Below the pieces are notes generated by a model. The model made no database searches, was not told the origin of the DNA, and worked only from the letters and a program-made list of their open reading frames with translations. From Octopus bimaculoides (Eukaryota), in assembly GCF_001194135.2 (NCBI RefSeq), contig NC_068992.1, forward strand, positions 59,067,735 to 59,131,734: a stretch of 64,000 nt of DNA, given 5' to 3'. Shown piece after piece: positions 5,664-44,430 of the stretch. The translations under genes were made by a program, and so were the position numbers. Each line of letters opens with the position of its first letter. Position 1 is the stretch's first letter.

Positions 5664-5894
5664 TAGACACAGAGAGAGACATACATACATATCTTACAGT
5701 GGGACCTGTAACAAGACAGAACTCTCTGCATTCAATAAAACAGTCGCCCCATAATGTGTCTGCAGTGCCAGTATTCATACCAACATTTCGGCTGCTTGAT
5801 TCGACGCTTGATGAGATCTGAGCCATTGATGGGAAAACCCAAGTGATGTAGACGGCCTCTACCTAAAACGAAAATAAGGCGGCAGGGACTTAAC

Positions 5895-6065
5895 TCAAAT
5901 TTGTCCTTGTTCAGCAGCATATTATTCTTTTCCGCCCATTGAATGACCGCCAGTAGATCTGATTGAAGCCTTGTCCGGTCACCCACATCGTTGATGACCT
6001 TCTGGATCTTGGAATCATCTGCAAAGATTCTTATGTTACTGTGCTTGATGATGTCAAGAGAGGGA
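5895..6065 (-). mobile_element. CR1/L2/Jockey-type LINE reverse transcriptase fragment
   Basis: IRIFADDSKIQKVINDVGDRTRLQSDLLAVIQWAEKNNMLLNKDKFEL: FADD catalytic motif plus LQxDL..W...NxMxxNxxK. Confidence 0.85.
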
Positions 6066-7042
6066 GGGAGGGATGTATAGTAATTCTTATTCATATATGT
6101 ATTATTTGTTTTATATTTGTGAAAATAATTTAACATATTCAGAATTTCTAACATGGGAATACCTCTGACATGTGCTTGGAAAGTATAGTCATGATTATCG
6201 ATTTGGTGACTATTGATCCATGATTGGTTTGGAGGTAAATATATCAGTCCTCGTTCATCACAAATGTTCAGCTTCCTAGAAAAAAAAAAAAAACGTGTTG
6301 AATTAATCAGCGGTAAATGAATAATAGAAAAATGGATGTCGATCCGATCCCCACAAGATGTGAACATTGTGGATGATCGCTGGAGCACCTTTCTTGCGGC
6401 CGATGCGGAATCTTTAACTGAAAGTCAATCCGTGTTGTCACAAATCAAATTGTGATATGCTTAATACGGTTCACAATGAGCATACCGTGTTATCCTGGAT
6501 CAGCAATGAATGAATCAGTAATAAACAAGGATAGATGTAATAATTATATCTTGTGGCAGCGACCTCAGTTAAACGGTAATAATAATTGTATGAATTGAAT
6601 CAACAACACTGTTTTCATTTCCGCTGGGATGCATATTAGTTCAATGACTTCATTAATGTTCTTAAGAAATTATTCCAACGTTATCCTCTCTAATTTTACC
6701 CTTTGTTATAAGCCTGAAATATTGCGAGTCAAAAATGAAAACTTATTTTTCGGTCGCTCGACATGGGTGAAATACCAACTATATTTTCTTTAAATCAAAA
6801 TTTGATGCCTCGTTTTTGAGGGTTTCTTTGTTTTTTGTTGTATTTTTCTGCTTTCGCTTTTGCTTTTTTAAAGAAAAAAAATAAGATAATGGACGAGATA
6901 ACCCTAGATATACAAATGACGCGAGATGAACCCGTTTGATAATAGGTCTGCACGGTCAGCGTTAACATGGAACTAAACAATAGCTACGACTGCAGCAGCA
7001 GCAAAAAACATCAGCAACGACATTTGAGGCGTTGTTCAGAGT

Positions 7043-10617: not shown

Positions 10618-11046
10618 ATAAGAAAAAGAAAATGGAGATTGAGAAGTTAATTATTATTTATTATTAACATCAAATTAATCATCATCCCTTTCAGCTGTTT
10701 CAATTACTACCCAGTAAATATTAAGTAAATATTAAGTTTATGTGACCTGAGCATAATACCTTCAGAGGGAAAAACAAAGAAAAAAACACACCCTAGGATG
10801 TTTTATATGTGCTCATGTATTGATTATAGCAGACTATTTCAGTCTGCTATAATGAATTCATAAACACATAAAACATCCAAGGGTATGTATTTTTTCCCCT
10901 TTGAAGATATTATGCTCAGGTCATATAAATTTAATATTTACTTAATGTTTACTGAGTATTAGTTGAAATAGCTGTAAGGGATGATAATTAATTTGCTGTT
11001 AATAATAAACAATTATTAACCTCCCAATCTCCATATCTTTTTCTTA
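10618..11046. mobile_element. Palindromic foldback / MITE-like element (~210-bp arms, 5-nt loop)
   Basis: Centre ATTATAGCAGACT-ATTTC-AGTCTGCTATAAT (loop 10836-10840); the arms align out to AAGAAAAAG..ATGGAGATTG / CAATCTCCAT..CTTTTTCTT. Confidence 0.85.
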
Positions 11047-11376
11047 TTTTATATGAATATAAGCTATTTGATCTTATATGATATAACCATTATGTTAAGA
11101 AAATAAATTACCCCAAAATACGAGGTATTTAACCAGTATTTCCTTGGATGAGACCATCCCTTCATGTGGTTAACATAACCTCTAATCGAATTTAAGTGTG
11201 TGTATATATATATATATATATACATATATATATGCGTATATAGTTTACATCGTAGGAATAAACTTTCAGATGTGAAGTCCGTTTTTACACTGGAACTCAA
11301 AACAAGAAGTAAATAAAGCTAAGAATAATAGCGTTTAAAAGTTGGGTAATGAACCCTTTGGATGGAAAAGGCCGAA

Positions 11377-11449
11377 GGCTGCAGGTGGGACACGAACTCA
11401 CATCTTCTGTAAATGTGACAGACGTTTTACTATTAAACTAAAGCAATCC
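11377..11449 (-). pseudogene. tRNA-like sequence (tRNA pseudogene or isolated SINE head), 73 nt
   Basis: Reverse complement GGATTGCTTTAGTTTAATAGTAAAACGTCTGTCACATTTACAGAAGATGTGAGTTCGTGTCCCACCTGCAGCC. It has a D-arm-like AGTTTAATAGTAAAAC, a 5-bp anticodon stem TCTGT/ACAGA with a 7-nt loop, and a T-arm GTGAG-TTCGTGT-CCCAC. The acceptor stem is imperfect. Confidence 0.55.
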
Positions 11450-12109
11450 TTCCAATTTCTCTATCCATTTTCTATCCAATTTCTCTATCCAATTTTGTTG
11501 TTACTATATATTGAAAAAGATATGAACATTACAACTTGACAATCTTGAACCCTGATTATGAAAAAAATCAATGTCTGTTAATTCATAAACGTAAGTAATA
11601 TATAGACTCTGTTTTTCGACCAAGAAACGCAGTAAAATTTTATTTATCCAAACATGCTTGACTTACTTCAAAGAACTTTCCATCGATAGAATCTCGAAAG
11701 AAACACTGCATGTTAATAAACCCCTTTGAAGCTGAAATATGCTTTAAAGACTCCAAGGTTAGCACATTCATTGATTCGTAGATGCGATCGTATATGGTTT
11801 TAAATGTCAGAATCGTTATTCCGTTCTCGTCAAATGGGTAGTAGACGAAGAATTCCGTTTCTTATCTTACGTTTATAAAACAGAGCTAACCAACGTGTTT
11901 ATTTGATCGATAATAAGCAGAAAAATTGATTTATTATCGCATTCCGATTGCCGAATATTATGTGTTAAAGTTTCGATATATCATCAATATCTTACCAACA
12001 TGAATGTTCTTGGATTGTGTAGAAAATTCACCGTGACAAATTCTGAGAGATCCCCTGCGTGTTGTTTTGAATGGAAGCAATGTTTGAGGTAATTTTTTAG
12101 ATCGCTTTT

Positions 12110-12390
12110 TCAGATTCGTCGACATCTAGCCATACGGTTCCGGATTTAGACCCACTGTCTATCACCTTGGGTAAGTGCATTCTACTATTGCCCCGAGCCG
12201 CCGATAGATGCCTTGTGAACGGATTTGGATGACGGAAACTGAAAAAGCCATATATATATATATATANNNNNNNNNNATGTTTATGTACATATGCATGTGT
12301 ATGTGTGTCTTTGTGTTTGTGCTTGTCCCCCATCATCGTATGACAACTGGTGATGGTTTACTTACGTTTCCGTAAATTAACGGTCCGGTA
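12110..12390 (+). mobile_element. tRNA-derived SINE family B, 3'-truncated
   Basis: CACCTTGGGTAAGTG..CTACTATTGCCCCGAGCC..GCCTTGTGAACGGATTTGG..GACGGAAACTGAAAAAGCC, an internal microsatellite, then TGTCCCCC..GACAACTGG..CGTTTCCGTAAATTAACGGTCCGG. Homologous to copies at 23489, 38345 and 61695. Confidence 0.8.
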
Positions 12391-12392
12391 CA

Positions 12393-12670
12393 CAAGATGG
12401 TCTAGCTTACGAGGTAGAAATAAATTTACGTATGATCGGCTGTGAGATGATACAGACTGCTGGTATCTTGTTGAAGTTACCTCAGGCTGCAATGGCAACA
12501 GGACAAGTCCTTTTCCAGAGGTTTTATTTCTCCAACTCATTTATGAAACACAACATGGAGGTAGTAGCAATGGCCTGTATGAACCTGGCGTTGAAAATAG
12601 AGGAATGTCCACGAAGGATTCGAGATACGATAAATGTTTTCCACCATATAAAGCAGTTACGAAGTGGAAA
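12393..12670 (+). pseudogene. CCNL: Cyclin L (CCNL1/2-like) N-terminal cyclin-box fragment, probable processed retrocopy
   Basis: In-frame [92 protein letters not shown] matches cyclin L (QDGL...[40 protein letters not shown]...[28 protein letters not shown]). No introns; in-frame stop at 12378 upstream; no true N- or C-terminus. Confidence 0.9.
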
Positions 12671-14316
12671 CTCTAAATGGAGTGCCAATGATGTTACCTG
12701 GCTGATCCTGTGTGCTCATGGGCTAGACACATCGTCTCCTCCACTGGCTTTACCTGGCTCATGAACCACATCCTAGATGCCATGGTTTGTATATTATCTG
12801 CACTGTCAGCAGAACTCAGAAATTGTGATGGAATTCCCTTCTCTGTTTTCTTCTTTTCTTTCTTTCCTTTCTTTTTCTTTTCTATTTTCTATTTTTTTTT
12901 TTTAAATCTCTTACTCTACTGAGTTGGAGCATTGTTTTGCATTTAACTGATAAGTATTTCTTATGGTTTCTTACTTTGTTACAACAGGAACGAAGGAGCC
13001 TCACTCTACTTTCACATGTTTTAGATAAAATAATAATTTAAATATTGCAGACATTTATTTTTAATTTGTAACAATATTTTTTTAAAAATCTTAAATATAA
13101 ATGAAAAAAATATGTATGTATAAAAATTTATTTAGTGTTAAAGTTTATACATTAAAGTTAGTCACTGTAATATAAAACTATTTTTTAATAATTTTATTAG
13201 ATTATTTACATTTTTGGTCCTTTCAATTTTTAACAAAAATACAATATTTAATTTGAAATAAAATTTGTTTATTTTTGTCTGCAACTTTATAATTGAAGAA
13301 AAAAATTATTTTAATTTAATTCAATCCTAAAATTAACTTTTAATAGTTGAAGTATATTTGTAATTTGTTTGACAAAATGTGTAAACAGGGGCGGCTTCAG
13401 TCGAGACTCAACAGTAAGGAATTTGTCTTCTGGAAGATCTCTCTGCAAATTCATGTCATATATGTTATTCAAGTTATTCTACCAGATAATGAATGATAAG
13501 TGGTGCGTGTGTGTTTGTGTGTATTTATCATGGGATACAAACGATTAGCTACAGGCATGGGCTCAGGCACAACTCTTTGCTACAGTTCATGCCTTTTAGG
13601 GAAAAATCAATTTTACATGAACATCTTTCTTAATGACTTAAAAAACTAACTTTGTATAGTTAATACTTTAACCCTTTAGCATCCAGAAAAGGAACCGGGC
13701 TTAAAGAAAAATAATTAATGTGGTTGATTTGTTGGACTAAAATATTTCAAGCCAATGAGCCAAATTAGCTGCAGTCCAACGACTGCAACAAGTCAAAGAT
13801 AAAACATAAAACATTCATACTCACTCACACGATAGACGCACATCTTCACCTTAATGATGCAATACTCTCATACACAATAAAACGCCTACATCGTTCATAT
13901 ATACATCTAATCCAAATATCTCCAAATTCGAATATTACCTGCCCAGTAAACAACTTAACTCGGTCGAGCACTCGTGAAAATCCATTGCTCAGTATGTTCA
14001 GCATCGTTTCACAAATTTCTTAACAACAATAACTTCACTCTATAATTAGTTTAACTCATTGTCTTCAATAAATATTCGTTTGATATTCAGATCTCATAAC
14101 AAAATAATAACCATAATTTAACTATGATAATCTCTACATGTTTAATTGAAAGATACGTTAATTCTTTCGTGTTTCCTTTGCATAGCAAACGTATGGTGTA
14201 CGAAGTTTCTGTCCACGACTTTATTCAGGTAAGACGCTAAATCTCATGAGATTTATAAATGGCACAATATTCAACTAGTTTCGAGAAGTGAAAACCATCA
14301 TTGCATGCATTGTGTT

Positions 14317-14345
14317 GATAGATAGATAGATAGACAGACAGATAT

Positions 14346-14410
<65 letters not shown>
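14317..14410. repeat. (GATA)n microsatellite
   Basis: Direct inspection. Confidence 0.95.
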
Positions 14411-14411
<1 letters not shown>

Positions 14412-16091
14412 GCAGAGACAGAGAGAGATACACACATACATATATATTTACAGAGAAAGATACTATTTTACACACACACACACGCACACACGCGCGCGCA
14501 TATATATACACATATTTGGCTTGTATTCAAACGAAACTTTTTCTGCGTAAAGAAGTTATTTTTTGTAGGGAAACNNNNNNNNNNNNNNNNNNNNNNNNNN
14601 NNNNNNNNNNNNNNNNNNNNNNNNNNNNNNNNNNNNNNNNNNNNNNNNNNNNNNNNNNNNNNNNNNNNNNNNNNNNNNNNNNNNNNNNNNNNNNNNNNNN
14701 NNNNNNNNNNNNNNNNNNNNNNNNNNNNNNNNNNNNNNNNNNNNNNNNNNNNNNNNNNNNNNNNNNNNNNNNNNNNNNNNNNNNNNNNNNNNNNNNNNNN
14801 NNNNNNNNNNNNNNNNNNNNNNNNNNNNNNNNNNNNNNNNNNNNNNNNNNNNNNNNNNNNNNNNNNNNNNNNNNNNNNNNNNNNNNNNNNNNNNNNNNNN
14901 NNNNNNNNNNNNNNNNNNNNNNNNNNNNNNNNNNNNNNNNNNNNNNNNNNNNNNNNNNNNNNNNNNNNNNNNNNNNNNNNNNNNNNNNNNNNNNNNNNNN
15001 NNNNNNNNNNNNNNNNNNNNNNNNNNNNNNNNNNNNNNNNNNNNNNNNNNNNNNNNNNNNNNNNNNNNNNNNNNNNNNNNNNNNNNNNNNNNNNNNNNNN
15101 NNNNNNNNNNNNNNNNNNNNNNNNNNNNNNNNNNNNNNNNNNNNNNNNNNNNNNNNNATATATACATGCTTTCGGCGGCGGATGTTATTTACATTTTAAT
15201 CAATTTATCATTCTCCACGCGTAGTAATATAAAACATCGCAATATGAGATTGTTCCAGTTTGTTGAGAGATTTATCTAATTATAACCTGTACCAACACAA
15301 ACATTTCTAAATATCTCATTGAAATTTCTATGGTCGAAATGCAGATTTTCTAATATTTTGCGTTGAATTCATTTGAAAATGAATTCTCTTCTCTTCTTCC
15401 AATTAAGTGGGCATGTAAATAATTGCAATTTTGCCTCAGTAATTTGTGCAAGGTGGTATAAATTGACAGGTACATGAATTTGTTCCAGGATGTAGCCTCA
15501 TTGGACTAAAATCAAAACATCATTTTATTCATTTAAGTGACTTTAATCTTAAACATGTGCGGTCTTTTGTTTCCCGTCTCTAGCTTCTCGGTTGAATGCT
15601 TACAAATGTGTAATATTATAGAATAGCCTAGCTTTGAAAGAAAATGTTTGCGATTTTATCATAAAAGCTATTGTCATCAAGACTATATACTTGGCATATT
15701 CATTTCTCTCTCCTTTTCTTTTCATTTGTTCAAACCAACTTTATATTTATTTATGGAAACAAAGAGGGGAAAAAACGCTATTATCTTTTCATATTAATTT
15801 AAAAAGCAATTCGCGTTGAATCATAAATTGAAATAACATTGTTGAAAATGCCATGGCAACATTCAATCAGCTGAAATCTGTTGTTTTAATTGTATCTCTT
15901 TCATTTTATATAATTTTATATAATTTCAAAATATTTCTACCCTTCTTCTAGCTGAAAGGCCTCAAATCAAGTCGAAATTGCAGTCCTTTAATTGTCAAAC
16001 TGACATATTCTCTCCGGGAGTTATAAGCCCAGAATTATTTCAGAGTAAATCTAGAAATAATCTTCTGATACAAAATTAATTAATATGCAGA

Positions 16092-23652: not shown

Positions 23653-23878
23653 TCTGTGTCTGTGTGTGTGCGTGTGTGTGTCTTTGTGTTTGTGGTCGAC
23701 CCCTCCGCCACCGCTTAACAACTGGTATTGGTGCATTTAGGTCCCCCGTAACTTAGCGGTTCGGCAAGAACCCCATAGAATAAATAACAGCTTTTAAAAT
23801 GGCGTCAATTCATTCGGCTACATATTTTGAAGCCGGTGCCCCAGTATGGCCGCAGTCTAATGCCTGAAACAAGCCAAT
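23489..23878 (+). mobile_element. SINE family B, near full length
   Basis: Head GGCGCAGATGTGGTTATATAGTAAAAAGCTTGCTTTCCAAC, internal (GT)n, CCCCGTAACTTAGCGGTTCGGCAA, tail GGTGCCCCAGTATGGCCGCAGTCTAATGCCTGAAACAAG. Confidence 0.85.
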
Positions 23879-26479
23879 AGTTTACCATAAATATACATTT
23901 CTACTTTTTCATGTCCGATGATTGTTGAATTTATTTGTCTAATTTTGGAGGAAACTTCCCGATAACAATAAAAACCTATAATATATAGGTTGATAAGTAG
24001 AAATTAAAATAAAGAACGTTCTTAATCACAGAGATAGAGACACGAATTATTTTTAAAATTCGGCAAATCAACAACTCCGAATTTCGGATGCAACTTTACA
24101 TCGACCCCAGTGCCCAACCGGTTCTTATTTCATCGAAAAGACCCCGAAAAGATGACAGGCAAAGTTGATTTACTATGCACAGCTTTGGTTACTAAATATT
24201 TGTAAACCAATCAGCCATTCCTGAGCCCACTACCTGAGTCTATGTTGAGAAGGAGAGAGGGTCATGTTTATAGCAAATGTATTTGCGCAGTGTGGTCTGA
24301 GTTGAATTTTGTTCAAAAGGAAATTAAAAACGTGTCGAATATATTTCACCAAACAGGTATTTATGTTTGAATTATTTCTGGGGCTAAACACTTCAGTTAA
24401 CATATTTAATACAGGAACAATTAAAACGCTAAATATAAATAACTATGAGGAGAAGAATAAGCAATGTTTGATTTAATAACTAATATTGTTTTAAACATTT
24501 AGAAAAGCACTGGAGACAACTCTAAGTATGTTTCTTACCACGAACTTATCAGTGAAATAGATTATTCTATATTTGCTGATGTAGCAATGAAAGTATTACT
24601 AAGTAAATTTACGAGACCGTCTGTTCGTCAATGTATGAAAATAGAATTGGTTAGGGATTAACTCAGACATCTCATCCGCATAAAAGAACAATAGTTACGT
24701 TAGTGTTAACATATTTCATGCTGATTGCCTCTATAGTCCGCCTTCTTATTTTGCAGAATAACGGAACGTTTCAGAGCGTTTCTCAAATATCTTAAAAGTT
24801 CTAATAATAATGTATCTTTACTGAATATTTTCCCACTCGTTTCCATTTCCTTATATTATACCCACCTCCAATATTTCACACATGAAACCTAGTTTCCTGT
24901 TTGTTTTTTATTTTTTTAATTAAAATTTTTTTTTTTTTTGGCATTCGTTGCATTTAAAAACTGGTATTTTCAGTTAACGTCTTTACTTTACCACATGATA
25001 CGATGTGCAAGTTTATTTTTTGTATTCTGACTTAGCTTTGCTTGGCTCTCTTACGTTTCAGGAGGGATTTTTCTTTTTGTAATTTTTGCAATGTTAGGAA
25101 GACAAAGAACTTAAAAAGCTGAATAGAACTTTGTGGCATAATAAACACGGACGTTTATGAATATGGATTTCCACGAAACGAATAAAATCCCACTTCTTTA
25201 CTAAATTGACAGCTTGGATTACAAGTAAAATTATCTTCGGAAATACCTTTTCTTTTTTTATTTTTCATTTTGTTTCTTTTGTAGATGAACGAAAATGCGC
25301 TGCATGAATCAATTTTATTTTGCACTAGATATGAGAGTATATTTGCATAAAATATACAAAGTGCTAAATACAAAAAGCAAAGTGTAGATGTATTAATTCA
25401 TACCTAAGTATCGGTAGTCGAAAGCTTATATGTGATAATATAGCTTCATTCTAAAAGAAGTTAGTTTTTCTTGTAATGTTTTAGGGTTCATCTAAAAATA
25501 GAGGAAGTTCCTAACAATTTGTCTTTATTTTCATCTACATAAAATCAATCCTGAAACTTTATATATACTCTCCTGTTAAAAATATTTTTTAGCAATATGA
25601 CGAAACGAAACACTTATTCAAAAAAAACCCAATCAAATTGATTTTATCCATCCTACTTGTATAAGATAAATAGAATCCATTGATTCTATATTGTCAATAA
25701 GGTTCGTCTACTGATGTGTGATAATCATTTATTGATCTCAGCTGAGTGCCTTTCCAGTTAGGTCTGCAGTGCGATAAAAACTCGGTACTTTTAGTGAAAC
25801 ATTCACAAATTTTATTACAGCATAGCCATTACTCTATAATAATAAATATTACTTCTACACGATATGTATTTAATACTGACATGCATTTAGTTAAAGACAC
25901 ACTACAACCAGTGAACACCAAGTAACAGCAATTATATCACAAAGTAATTGACGAAATCCTTATTCCAGTAACCATTTCCAAAATATAACTACATTGTACA
26001 TAAGCGATTGCAAATAAGACTCAAGAAAACTAATTCATTGTTTCAGAAATGAATTTGTTTCAGAAGCTGTAAAAATATTTCATGGCTATGATTAATAATT
26101 TCTAAGGCAAAGAAAATATTTAAAATAGAAAACGTACAAAACAGAGGAAATAATTCATATTAAAAAATAACATGGTAAAATTACCATTTCCAGCCATTTT
26201 GAATTATTATCATTATCATTATTATCATTATTATTATTATTATTATTATTGTTATTATTATTATTATTCATCGCGGAATACATAAGATGTGATTTCAAAC
26301 GCTCCAGTTTGGTGCAGCTTAAAACATTTATTTACACTGGTTTGATGCTTATTTACATTATTTATGTTATTCCAAGTTGTCAATAGAAACACCAGGAACC
26401 TGTTACTGGTTTTCTGCTGTTGTTTGCCCTCCCCCCCCACTCAGGTGCTATAATTTGACCCACCAAAGAAGTTCGGTGG

Positions 26480-37745: not shown

Positions 37746-37964
37746 GTATATATTTTAGCGCCTTTTTTTACTAAAGAAAAAAATAAGAAAAACAGGGGCT
37801 TGATTCAAAGGAAGATTGGTTGTTATACTTCGCGTGTCAAGGGACCGTATAGATGTTGATATTGTTGATGTTGCTGTTATTGTCGATGTTATTATTGTTG
37901 TCTGGTATTGCAGTTATTCTTCTTCTTCTTCTTGTTGATCTTGTTGTTGTTGTTGTTACTGTAA

Positions 37965-38327
37965 TTGTCTCTTGCCGCACTGATTTTCTTGGACTTTGGT
38001 GACACGTTTCCAGCACTCCTTCCTGCTTTGTTGGGGTTGTCGATGTTCGTGATCTTCCGGAACGCTTCTCGTGGACATTCTGAACAGTTCCATCGGCTTC
38101 AAACTTATCTCTAATTCGAATGATGGTAAGTCGCGTTGGTGGATCTGTTTGAAACTCCCTCCTAAACTGTCTTTGCACTTCAACTACGTTTTCACATTTC
38201 CAGTAGCATTTTAGAATGAATTTCCTTTGTTCAAAGTTAATTCCAATGGGTTTAATCTGGAAACAAAAATCATCAATTGAGTTATCAGCTGCTAAAGTGT
38301 GTAAACACTATTTTAGGACACCCTGTA
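37965..38327 (-). mobile_element. Tc1/Tc3-like transposon 5' end (HTH region and one TIR)
   Basis: QRQFRREFQTDPPTRLTIIRIRDKFEADGTVQNVHEKRSGRSRTS...QSPRKSVRQ. End reads TA|CAGGGTGTCCTAAAA on the minus strand at 38311-38327. Confidence 0.85.
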
Positions 38328-43384: not shown

Positions 43385-43789
43385 CATACGTACGTGTCTG
43401 ACCACCACTTGTACCTACACCTTCATGGCGCCTGACGTGGCTTTTTAAACCGGGCAATGTATTGAAAAGACACCGACATAAATTTCATATCCGATTTAGA
43501 CGACCAAGAACTGTAAGTTAAGTTCTAAACTTAGTGTACCTTAAAATGTATTTTGAAAAACTTTGATTTAATTTAAACGATGTCTGCAAACGCAAAGACA
43601 TCTGTGTCTGAAGTCAAAAACCCCCATTTAATGTTTAAAATACGGCGAATGCATTTTTGCTGGAATCGTTGTAACAATTTGAAATGTCTTTCATAACACG
43701 TCCATGTTTCAGAAAAATACAACAAGGATAGTAAGACAAACAATTTGTAAAGAGCTAATTTTGTGTTACTATTTATGTCGTTGGCGCCT

Positions 43790-44430
43790 AACGCGTGTGC
43801 GGCCCTTTGAATTCGCAGATGTATTTCTGTGTCCAGATTTCAATCATTTTGTACAGAACATCGAAAGTAGATGAAAGATCAACAACCTCAAGTAACTTAG
43901 CCTTACCGAAAATTTTAGCGGAGTTGCAAACAGCACCACATGCAAGTTGAAACATTGCAACTGTTCTTTTCAAATTTATGGTGAATCCAAAATCATCACA
44001 AGCTGAGTGAAATGCAGATGCAAAAGTGTGCAGGCCCGTTTCAGGGTGACTGGCTACACCGCAATCGTCAGTGTATAAAAGTTCCTTAATGAGTGAAGTA
44101 AAAACCTTTGTTTTGAATTTCAGTCTGGTCAGATTAAAAACATTCCCTGTTGTTCGATATTTTATGTAAAAACCCTCCTCGGAGTTTTGAAAAGCGTGTG
44201 ACAGCACAACAGTAGAGTATATTGCAAAGAGAGTTGGTGCATCAAGGTCTCCTTATTTTACTCCATTTTCCACGGCAAAAGATTCAGAAAGCCTACCACT
44301 ATAATAAACTCTAGCCTTCATATCTTGATACAAATTTGTTCACAAATTTTTCTGAGCAACCTATTTTCCTTGGAATTAGCGACAGAGCATTTTGATTAAC
44401 AGTATCGAAAGCAATGGTATAGTATAAGAT
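43790..44430 (-). mobile_element. RTE (BovB-like) LINE reverse transcriptase remnant
   Basis: AFDTVNQNAL...KIGCSEKFVN, FAVENGVK*G..APTLF, YIKYRTTGNVFNLTRLKFKTKV...ELLYTDDC...FGFTINLKRT. Confidence 0.9.

Follow-up and report, generated by a model that had tools for sequence, protein, structure and literature searches.

A probable processed retrocopy of cyclin L1 in the genome of Octopus bimaculoides, copied from an isoform that ends in an alternative exon

The sequence between positions 12393 and 13687 of the window (the whole 64 kb stretch of O. bimaculoides DNA analysed here) is very probably a non-functional processed pseudogene fragment, i.e. a retrocopy, of octopus cyclin L1. This assignment follows from the lack of introns at three parental junctions, the bounding of the insert by SINE sequence and the relaxed constraint on the copy. 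It is an ordinary dead retrocopy with one unusual trait, that a stop-containing alternative isoform was copied. A first-pass annotation made from the letters alone had proposed a 5′-truncated processed retrocopy of a spliced cyclin L RNA. The analysis supports this proposal and indicates that the template was an isoform with exons 1-2-3-3a. The features at the locus are as follows.

12267-12276, no strand: assembly gap (10 N), 117 bp upstream of the copy
12296-12392, + strand: left half of a SINE, with a TG-rich start from ~12278, ending ...GGTCCGGTACA
12393-12485, + strand: copy of the last 93 nt of exon 1 (QDGLAYEV...LKLPQ), identified by blastn to the parents
12486-12560, + strand: copy of exon 2, 75 nt, joined to exon 1 without an intron
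12561-12670, + strand: copy of exon 3, 110 nt, with S>L (TCG>TTG at 12592), joined to exon 2 without an intron
12671-13687, + strand: copy of alternative exon 3a (located inside parental intron 3), colinear with the parents
12432-12764, + strand: incidental 110-codon ORF (MIGCEM...LPGS-stop), the ATG of which is new in the retrocopy
13688-13815, + strand: right half of the SINE, continuing the reference SINE exactly where the left half stops

Cyclin L identity and the missing introns

In the segment 12393-12670 the N-terminal box of cyclin L is represented by 92 2/3 codons. The translation matches Pfam Cyclin_N (1.2e-7, profile positions 26-101 of 127 only) and tblastn against cuttlefish CCNL gives 5e-65, so that the intronless cyclin L N-terminal fragment noticed in the first reading is real. 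CCNL of the cuttlefish Acanthosepion pharaonis is 89% identical to the product at the protein level, and the cyclin L1 proteins of many animals are 70-78% identical to it. The parental locus was found by blastn as O. bimaculoides CCNL1 (L007), a separate locus with 95-98% identity and values of 1e-29 to 1e-48 for the individual exons. The full-length O. bimaculoides cyclin L1, found in the protein database with a padded 377-aa query, has 478 aa. The whole 64 kb window was searched by tblastn using cephalopod, limpet and other cyclin L proteins as queries, and no further cyclin L exon was found in it; this rules out a real cyclin L gene at this locus. The complete two-fold cyclin box and the C-terminal RS domain are absent from the window.

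We compared the cyclin L1 loci of cuttlefish (L001), O. bimaculoides (L007), O. sinensis (L008) and Argonauta hians (L009). In all four, exon 1 ends in ...CTACCTCAG followed by gt, and exons 2 and 3 have lengths of 75 and 110 nt, with AG/GT bounds. The bases after parental exon 1 are gtaagg, gtaggt or gtatgt. The blocks 12486-12560 and 12561-12670 of the window, which had been equated with exons 2 and 3 of the vertebrate gene, correspond exactly to these exons in the four cephalopod parents, and the vertebrate sizes of 75 and 110 nt are also correct in the CCNL1 locus of the primate Saimiri. All four parent genes have GT-AG introns at the positions corresponding to 12485/6, 12560/1 and 12670/1, where parental introns had been anticipated. 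Intron 1 is 1.7-8.8 kb long in the parents, and overall parental introns of 1.5-9 kb are precisely missing from the copy.

The copy begins 111 nt into the coding sequence. Its exon 1 part is 95.7% identical to O. bimaculoides (L007 3112-3205), 90.4% to O. sinensis and 74% to cuttlefish. The exon 2 copy has 93.7% identity to L007 4888-4962, which is flanked there by ag...gttagt, and that of exon 3 has 96.4% identity to L007 7779-7888, flanked by ag...gtaagt. In many other animals the exon-1 ORFs enter an intron right after LKLPQ, which is consistent with this being an old intron position.

The extension into exon 3a and the split SINE

The cyclin L similarity had been taken to end at 12670. This is true of the canonical protein only, and homology to the parent gene runs unbroken to 13687, giving a retrocopied insert of 1,295 bp (12393-13687). 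The section 12671-13687 is colinear with a single stretch of O. sinensis intron 3 (L008 10866-11910; an alignment of 1075 columns that scores 1401 bits and has 34 mismatches and 15 small gaps). It also matches O. bimaculoides at L007 9903-10037 (97.8%) and 11226-11326 (91.6%), flanking an assembly gap, Argonauta (87.6% over 234 nt) and cuttlefish (75% over 287 nt). We considered whether the 3a region might be a SINE or other repeat, and rejected this; apart from T-rich low complexity, neither the window nor the parent loci contain a second copy of it.

The gap in the chromosome-level O. bimaculoides assembly lies inside exon 3a and is 1,188 N in length (L007 10038-11225). The sequence missing from it is seen at 12806-13580 of the retrocopy and in O. 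sinensis at L008 ~11001-11809, so that the retrocopy shows the content of this 1.2 kb gap.

In all four parents the 3a match starts directly after a polypyrimidine tract and ...TTGCACAG. About 70 nt of intron upstream of the 3a AG are kept among the parents, and exon 3 stands in their place in the window, the junction in the copy reading ...GTGGAAA followed directly by CTCTAAATGG. Since the upstream intron is replaced by exon 3 at a conserved acceptor, exon 3 was spliced to 3a in the template RNA. Approximately 1 kb of 3a is then read through without a splice. The in-frame stop of the 3a copy is the TGA at 12762-12764.

In alignment, the left half of the SINE covers the initial ~100 positions of another copy, at 23668-23900. 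When the two flanks of the insert are joined they rebuild one SINE, identical to the 23668-23900 copy at 163 of 215 positions, with nothing clearly lost or duplicated. The limits of the insertion are placed at 12393 and 13687 because the two halves rejoin into one element in this way. A truncated SINE fused to the copy had been described at first. A SINE does adjoin the 5′ end; it is not truncated, its other half being at 13688-13815, and it is the target of the insertion rather than a fusion partner, with its halves rejoining around the copy. In addition to that at 23668-23900, a further copy of the same SINE family is present in the window at 52600-52720, and we take the family to resemble an abundant Octopus SINE. 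An Rfam scan of 12000-14500 gave nothing above threshold. A mir-297 match to the TG-rich SINE start (12279-12380) was dismissed as chance, with 28 bits against a gathering score of 90.

The split SINE bears on the possibility that the structure is an assembly artefact, arising from cDNA contamination or a chimeric contig. The window is part of an AT-rich, gap-rich draft scaffold with 23 runs of N, one of which lies just upstream of the copy, and the contig bearing the whole structure (12277-14574) is only 2.3 kb long. Yet both insertion junctions fall within that contig, and the flanks are matching halves of one SINE. Moreover, cDNA contaminating from the same animal would be equal to the parent, whereas here 13 of the 278 coding positions, together with further sites in 3a, differ between the copy and the O. 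bimaculoides parent, and they do so in a decay-like pattern. We therefore regard an artefact as extremely unlikely.

At the 5′ junction the sequence CAAGA can be assigned to either the SINE or cyclin L, i.e. there is microhomology. The last bases of the copy at the 3′ junction are ...CATCCAGA, and the SINE sequence AAAGGAACC comes next; in the parents the sequence beyond this point reads ATTACTCTG... and is not rich in A. The copy lacks an A-rich tail at its 3′ end, where at most 3-4 A's are found that are supplied by the SINE target, and neither AATAAA nor ATTAAA occurs up to 40 nt from that end. Any flanking repeat at the insert is at most a degenerate 4-6 nt (CAAGA / AAAGGA), overlapping the parental sequence too.

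These junctions might be read as the product of a single event without a pre-existing SINE, in which reverse transcription switched template from SINE RNA to cyclin L RNA and back to SINE. The order SINE-mRNA-SINE on the same strand, the CAAGA microhomology and the ending of the mRNA part without a tail or a clear duplication would all be in keeping with such a chimeric retrotranscript. It would, however, need two switches that left and re-entered the SINE at the same nucleotide, and the same arrangement is accounted for by one event, an insertion into one of the many copies of the SINE. The probability of this alternative is as low as that of an artefact.

An insertion of cyclin L1 cDNA into an existing SINE is therefore retained, and a probable series of events can be suggested. 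In the template RNA introns 1 and 2 had been removed and exon 3 spliced to 3a deep in intron 3, so that the template was an unproductive or truncated isoform (exons 1-2-3-3a) and not the canonical mRNA. Its reverse transcription, in trans, was presumably the work of a LINE-type enzyme. Copying ended, or the cDNA was cut, 111 nt into the coding sequence, and the cDNA was inserted into the SINE, splitting 12296-12392 from 13688-13815. Thereafter the copy has drifted without constraint at the protein level. As to the mode of insertion, the cDNA might have been 3′-truncated, or a longer nuclear transcript that was incompletely processed might have been its source, with capture at a break.

A poly(A) tail and a target-site duplication are the classical hallmarks of LINE-mediated retroposition (PMC5470649). 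Like the processed pseudogenes made by LINEs (PMC5470649), the octopus copy is an intron-free, 5′-truncated copy of a multi-exon gene at an unrelated locus, and has undergone neutral decay. Unlike them, it has no recognisable poly(A) remnant or target-site duplication, and its template was an isoform ending in an alternative intronic exon. The lack of a clear poly(A) tail, target-site duplication and polyadenylation signal weakly favours a truncated or break-captured cDNA, and classical endonuclease-driven target-primed insertion may be a somewhat poorer fit.

Endonuclease-independent LINE-1 insertions and the capture of cDNA at double-strand breaks have been described in mammalian cells and yeast. 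The octopus copy resembles these in its lack of a tail and of any clear duplication, in the microhomology at its junction and in having a 3′ end that is not at a polyadenylation site, although a break and an enzyme at the octopus site are hypothetical. We know of no cephalopod LINE families that make processed pseudogenes routinely, and our search for literature on octopus retrocopies found no paper.

We note two ORFs in the window, 5732-6388 and 43788-44207 (both - strand), in which the reverse-transcriptase-like motifs FADD and YTDD can be seen by eye; Pfam gave no match for either. Another ORF (37837-38178, - strand) has a DUF4817 helix-turn-helix domain (2.7e-6) and is probably a transposase remnant.

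Decay of the copy and its age

Coding changes were polarised using O. sinensis, Argonauta and cuttlefish. This places seven amino acid replacements on the retrocopy branch.

12423: D>N, retrocopy branch
12434: I>M, retrocopy branch
12487: V>A, retrocopy branch
12529: Y>F, retrocopy branch
12536: K>N, retrocopy branch
12543: V>M, retrocopy branch
12592: S>L (TCG>TTG), retrocopy branch

All seven affect residues that are invariant in the four cephalopods, and they are accompanied on the branch by 4-5 silent changes. The last is the change of LASKIEE to LALKIEE that had first suggested a loss of constraint, and it is specific to the retrocopy. The ratio of 7N:4-5S is compatible with neutrality (binomial p=0.15-0.26). 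By contrast the parents of O. bimaculoides and O. sinensis differ by 0N:11S (Fisher p=0.0046 against the retrocopy branch), and the comparison of octopus and cuttlefish parents, entered as 2N:42S, gives p=1e-4 against that branch. Among the parent genes the Nei-Gojobori pN/pS is 0.00-0.05, while omega for the retrocopy branch is roughly 0.4-1, a value derived from only ~12 changes. The loss of constraint is thus borne out. Three further retrocopy-specific changes lie within the otherwise invariant core of 3a. Bases that set the retrocopy apart include 12592T, 12715C and 12731A.

The reading frame is open from the TAA at 12378-12380, a stop that had been noted previously, to the TGA at 12762-12764, i.e. 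for 128 codons. Within it, a retrocopy-specific T>G at 12434 (ATT>ATG, the I>M replacement above) made the ATG of the 110-aa ORF. It could be argued from the open frame, the new ATG at 12432 and the point estimate of branch omega below 1 that this is a retrogene with a function, or that it serves as an exon in a cyclin-L-like paralogue and is under purifying selection; it might then encode a short dominant-negative half-cyclin. The open frame, however, merely copies the parental isoform as far as its own stop, and is preceded by an in-frame stop in SINE sequence. The product would contain ~93 of roughly 250 cyclin box residues and would lack the second cyclin fold and the RS domain, and the seven replacements at cephalopod-invariant residues include some in the QVAMATGQ and LASKIEE motifs. 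A search of the protein database found no identical protein. We consider a functional product to be very unlikely, and continue to regard the copy as a pseudogene.

The copy and the O. bimaculoides parent have in common at least four derived bases relative to O. sinensis and the outgroups. These shared bases indicate that the copy arose in the O. bimaculoides lineage, after its separation from that of O. sinensis. The divergence of the copy itself is ~2.5-4%, of the same order as the per-lineage intron divergence of the two Octopus species, for which intron mismatches total ~6-7%. A Logan contig (L002, from SRR11869390) mismatches O. bimaculoides at ~9% of positions; it comes from a third octopod, which is not the source species of the window.

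Exon 3a in the parent genes and a vertebrate parallel

The polypyrimidine tract and CAG of the 3a acceptor are conserved in the four species, and an exon of the cuttlefish gene model P0001 begins at this same acceptor, as does the junction in the retrocopy. Together these three observations argue that the 3a 3′ splice site is functional and used in vivo. The conserved core of 3a runs from 12671 to ~12845 in window positions, and its first ~125 nt are almost invariant in the four species. Between octopus and cuttlefish the 3a block (the acceptor and first ~120 nt) has 85.9% identity over 184 nt, compared with 78-85% for the coding exons, and is the only alignable island in an intron 3 of 12-16 kb. 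The alignable parts of the locus in these two animals are the coding exons, the 3a block and one island after exon 5, and nothing else. The 3a comparison spans roughly 270 million years of cephalopod evolution.

In Octopus and cuttlefish 31 codons of 3a precede its in-frame stop; in Argonauta there are 93, and a 5-nt insertion there shifts the frame while leaving the nucleotide conservation undisturbed. Nearly all the differences in 3a between octopus and cuttlefish alter an amino acid. From the frame shift in Argonauta and these mostly amino-acid-changing differences it follows that the constraint on 3a acts on the RNA and not on the peptide. As judged from sequence, this pattern of conservation looks like the signature of a regulated unproductive exon.

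A retrocopy-specific G>C at 12715 affects a G that is invariant in all four parents (..CTGTGTGGTCATGG). It removes a GT that might be an internal splice donor.

The island after exon 5 of cephalopod cyclin L1 (L007 26414-26506, corresponding to L001 24817-24910, 87%) has a counterpart in position in vertebrates, where an island also follows exon 5 (L010 9038-9304, corresponding to L011 11853-12132, 82%). This may be another alternative exon. A limpet isoform of 192 aa (P0002) ends right after exon 5. We also note that a number of short cyclin L models or transcripts (P0003, P0006, P0010, P0027, P0035, P0040 and P0045) depart from the canonical protein precisely where exon 3 ends, and reach a stop shortly afterwards; the species include horseshoe crab, snail, sea anemone and several insects. 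P0041, P0056, P0008 and P0009 look like plain intron read-through, and the others may contain alternative exons from that same intron.

Intron 3 of vertebrate CCNL1 contains a block that is more conserved than the coding exons (L010 3907-4270 in Saimiri, L012 3536-3900 and L011 4655-4923), with 90.8% identity over 368 nt between monkey and bird and 77% over 273 nt between monkey and shark. After the AG at L010 4022 an in-frame stop is reached after 10 codons (SDQLHLPKPG-stop). This element and cephalopod 3a lie in the same intron and in the same phase. Comparison of the two gave no sequence similarity, with only 8-11-mers at the level of chance, and common descent of the cephalopod and vertebrate elements is for that reason only a possibility.

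A recent preprint lists CCNL1 among genes with conserved poison exons (bioRxiv 10.1101/2025.04.06.646893). The vertebrate block was found here by its conservation, and is a candidate for that exon. Parental 3a is similar to the conserved poison exons of RNA-processing genes in being an alternative exon with an in-frame stop, in having nucleotide conservation that equals or exceeds that of the coding exons independently of reading frame, and in sharing intron and phase with the stop-containing element of vertebrate CCNL1. The likeness holds for the parent gene and not for the pseudogene. It is conceivable, although we would not think it probable, that the pseudogene preserves, as a germline fossil, an unproductive isoform of cyclin L1 and that 3a is a regulated stop-containing exon, the counterpart of the vertebrate intron-3 element.

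A function of the pseudogene is unlikely, and it has little importance in itself. It does provide a clean example of retroposition in an octopus genome, with insertion limits that are base-exact by virtue of the split SINE. It is also independent evidence for the existence in the germline of a cyclin L1 transcript with exons 1-2-3-3a that is not annotated, and it draws attention to exon 3a as one of the most conserved non-coding stretches of the cyclin L1 gene. The likeness to vertebrate CCNL1 suggests an autoregulatory splicing switch, possibly of ancient origin, in a cyclin that activates the spliceosome. If this is true, the control of cyclin L dosage by unproductive splicing at intron 3 would predate the protostome-deuterostome split.
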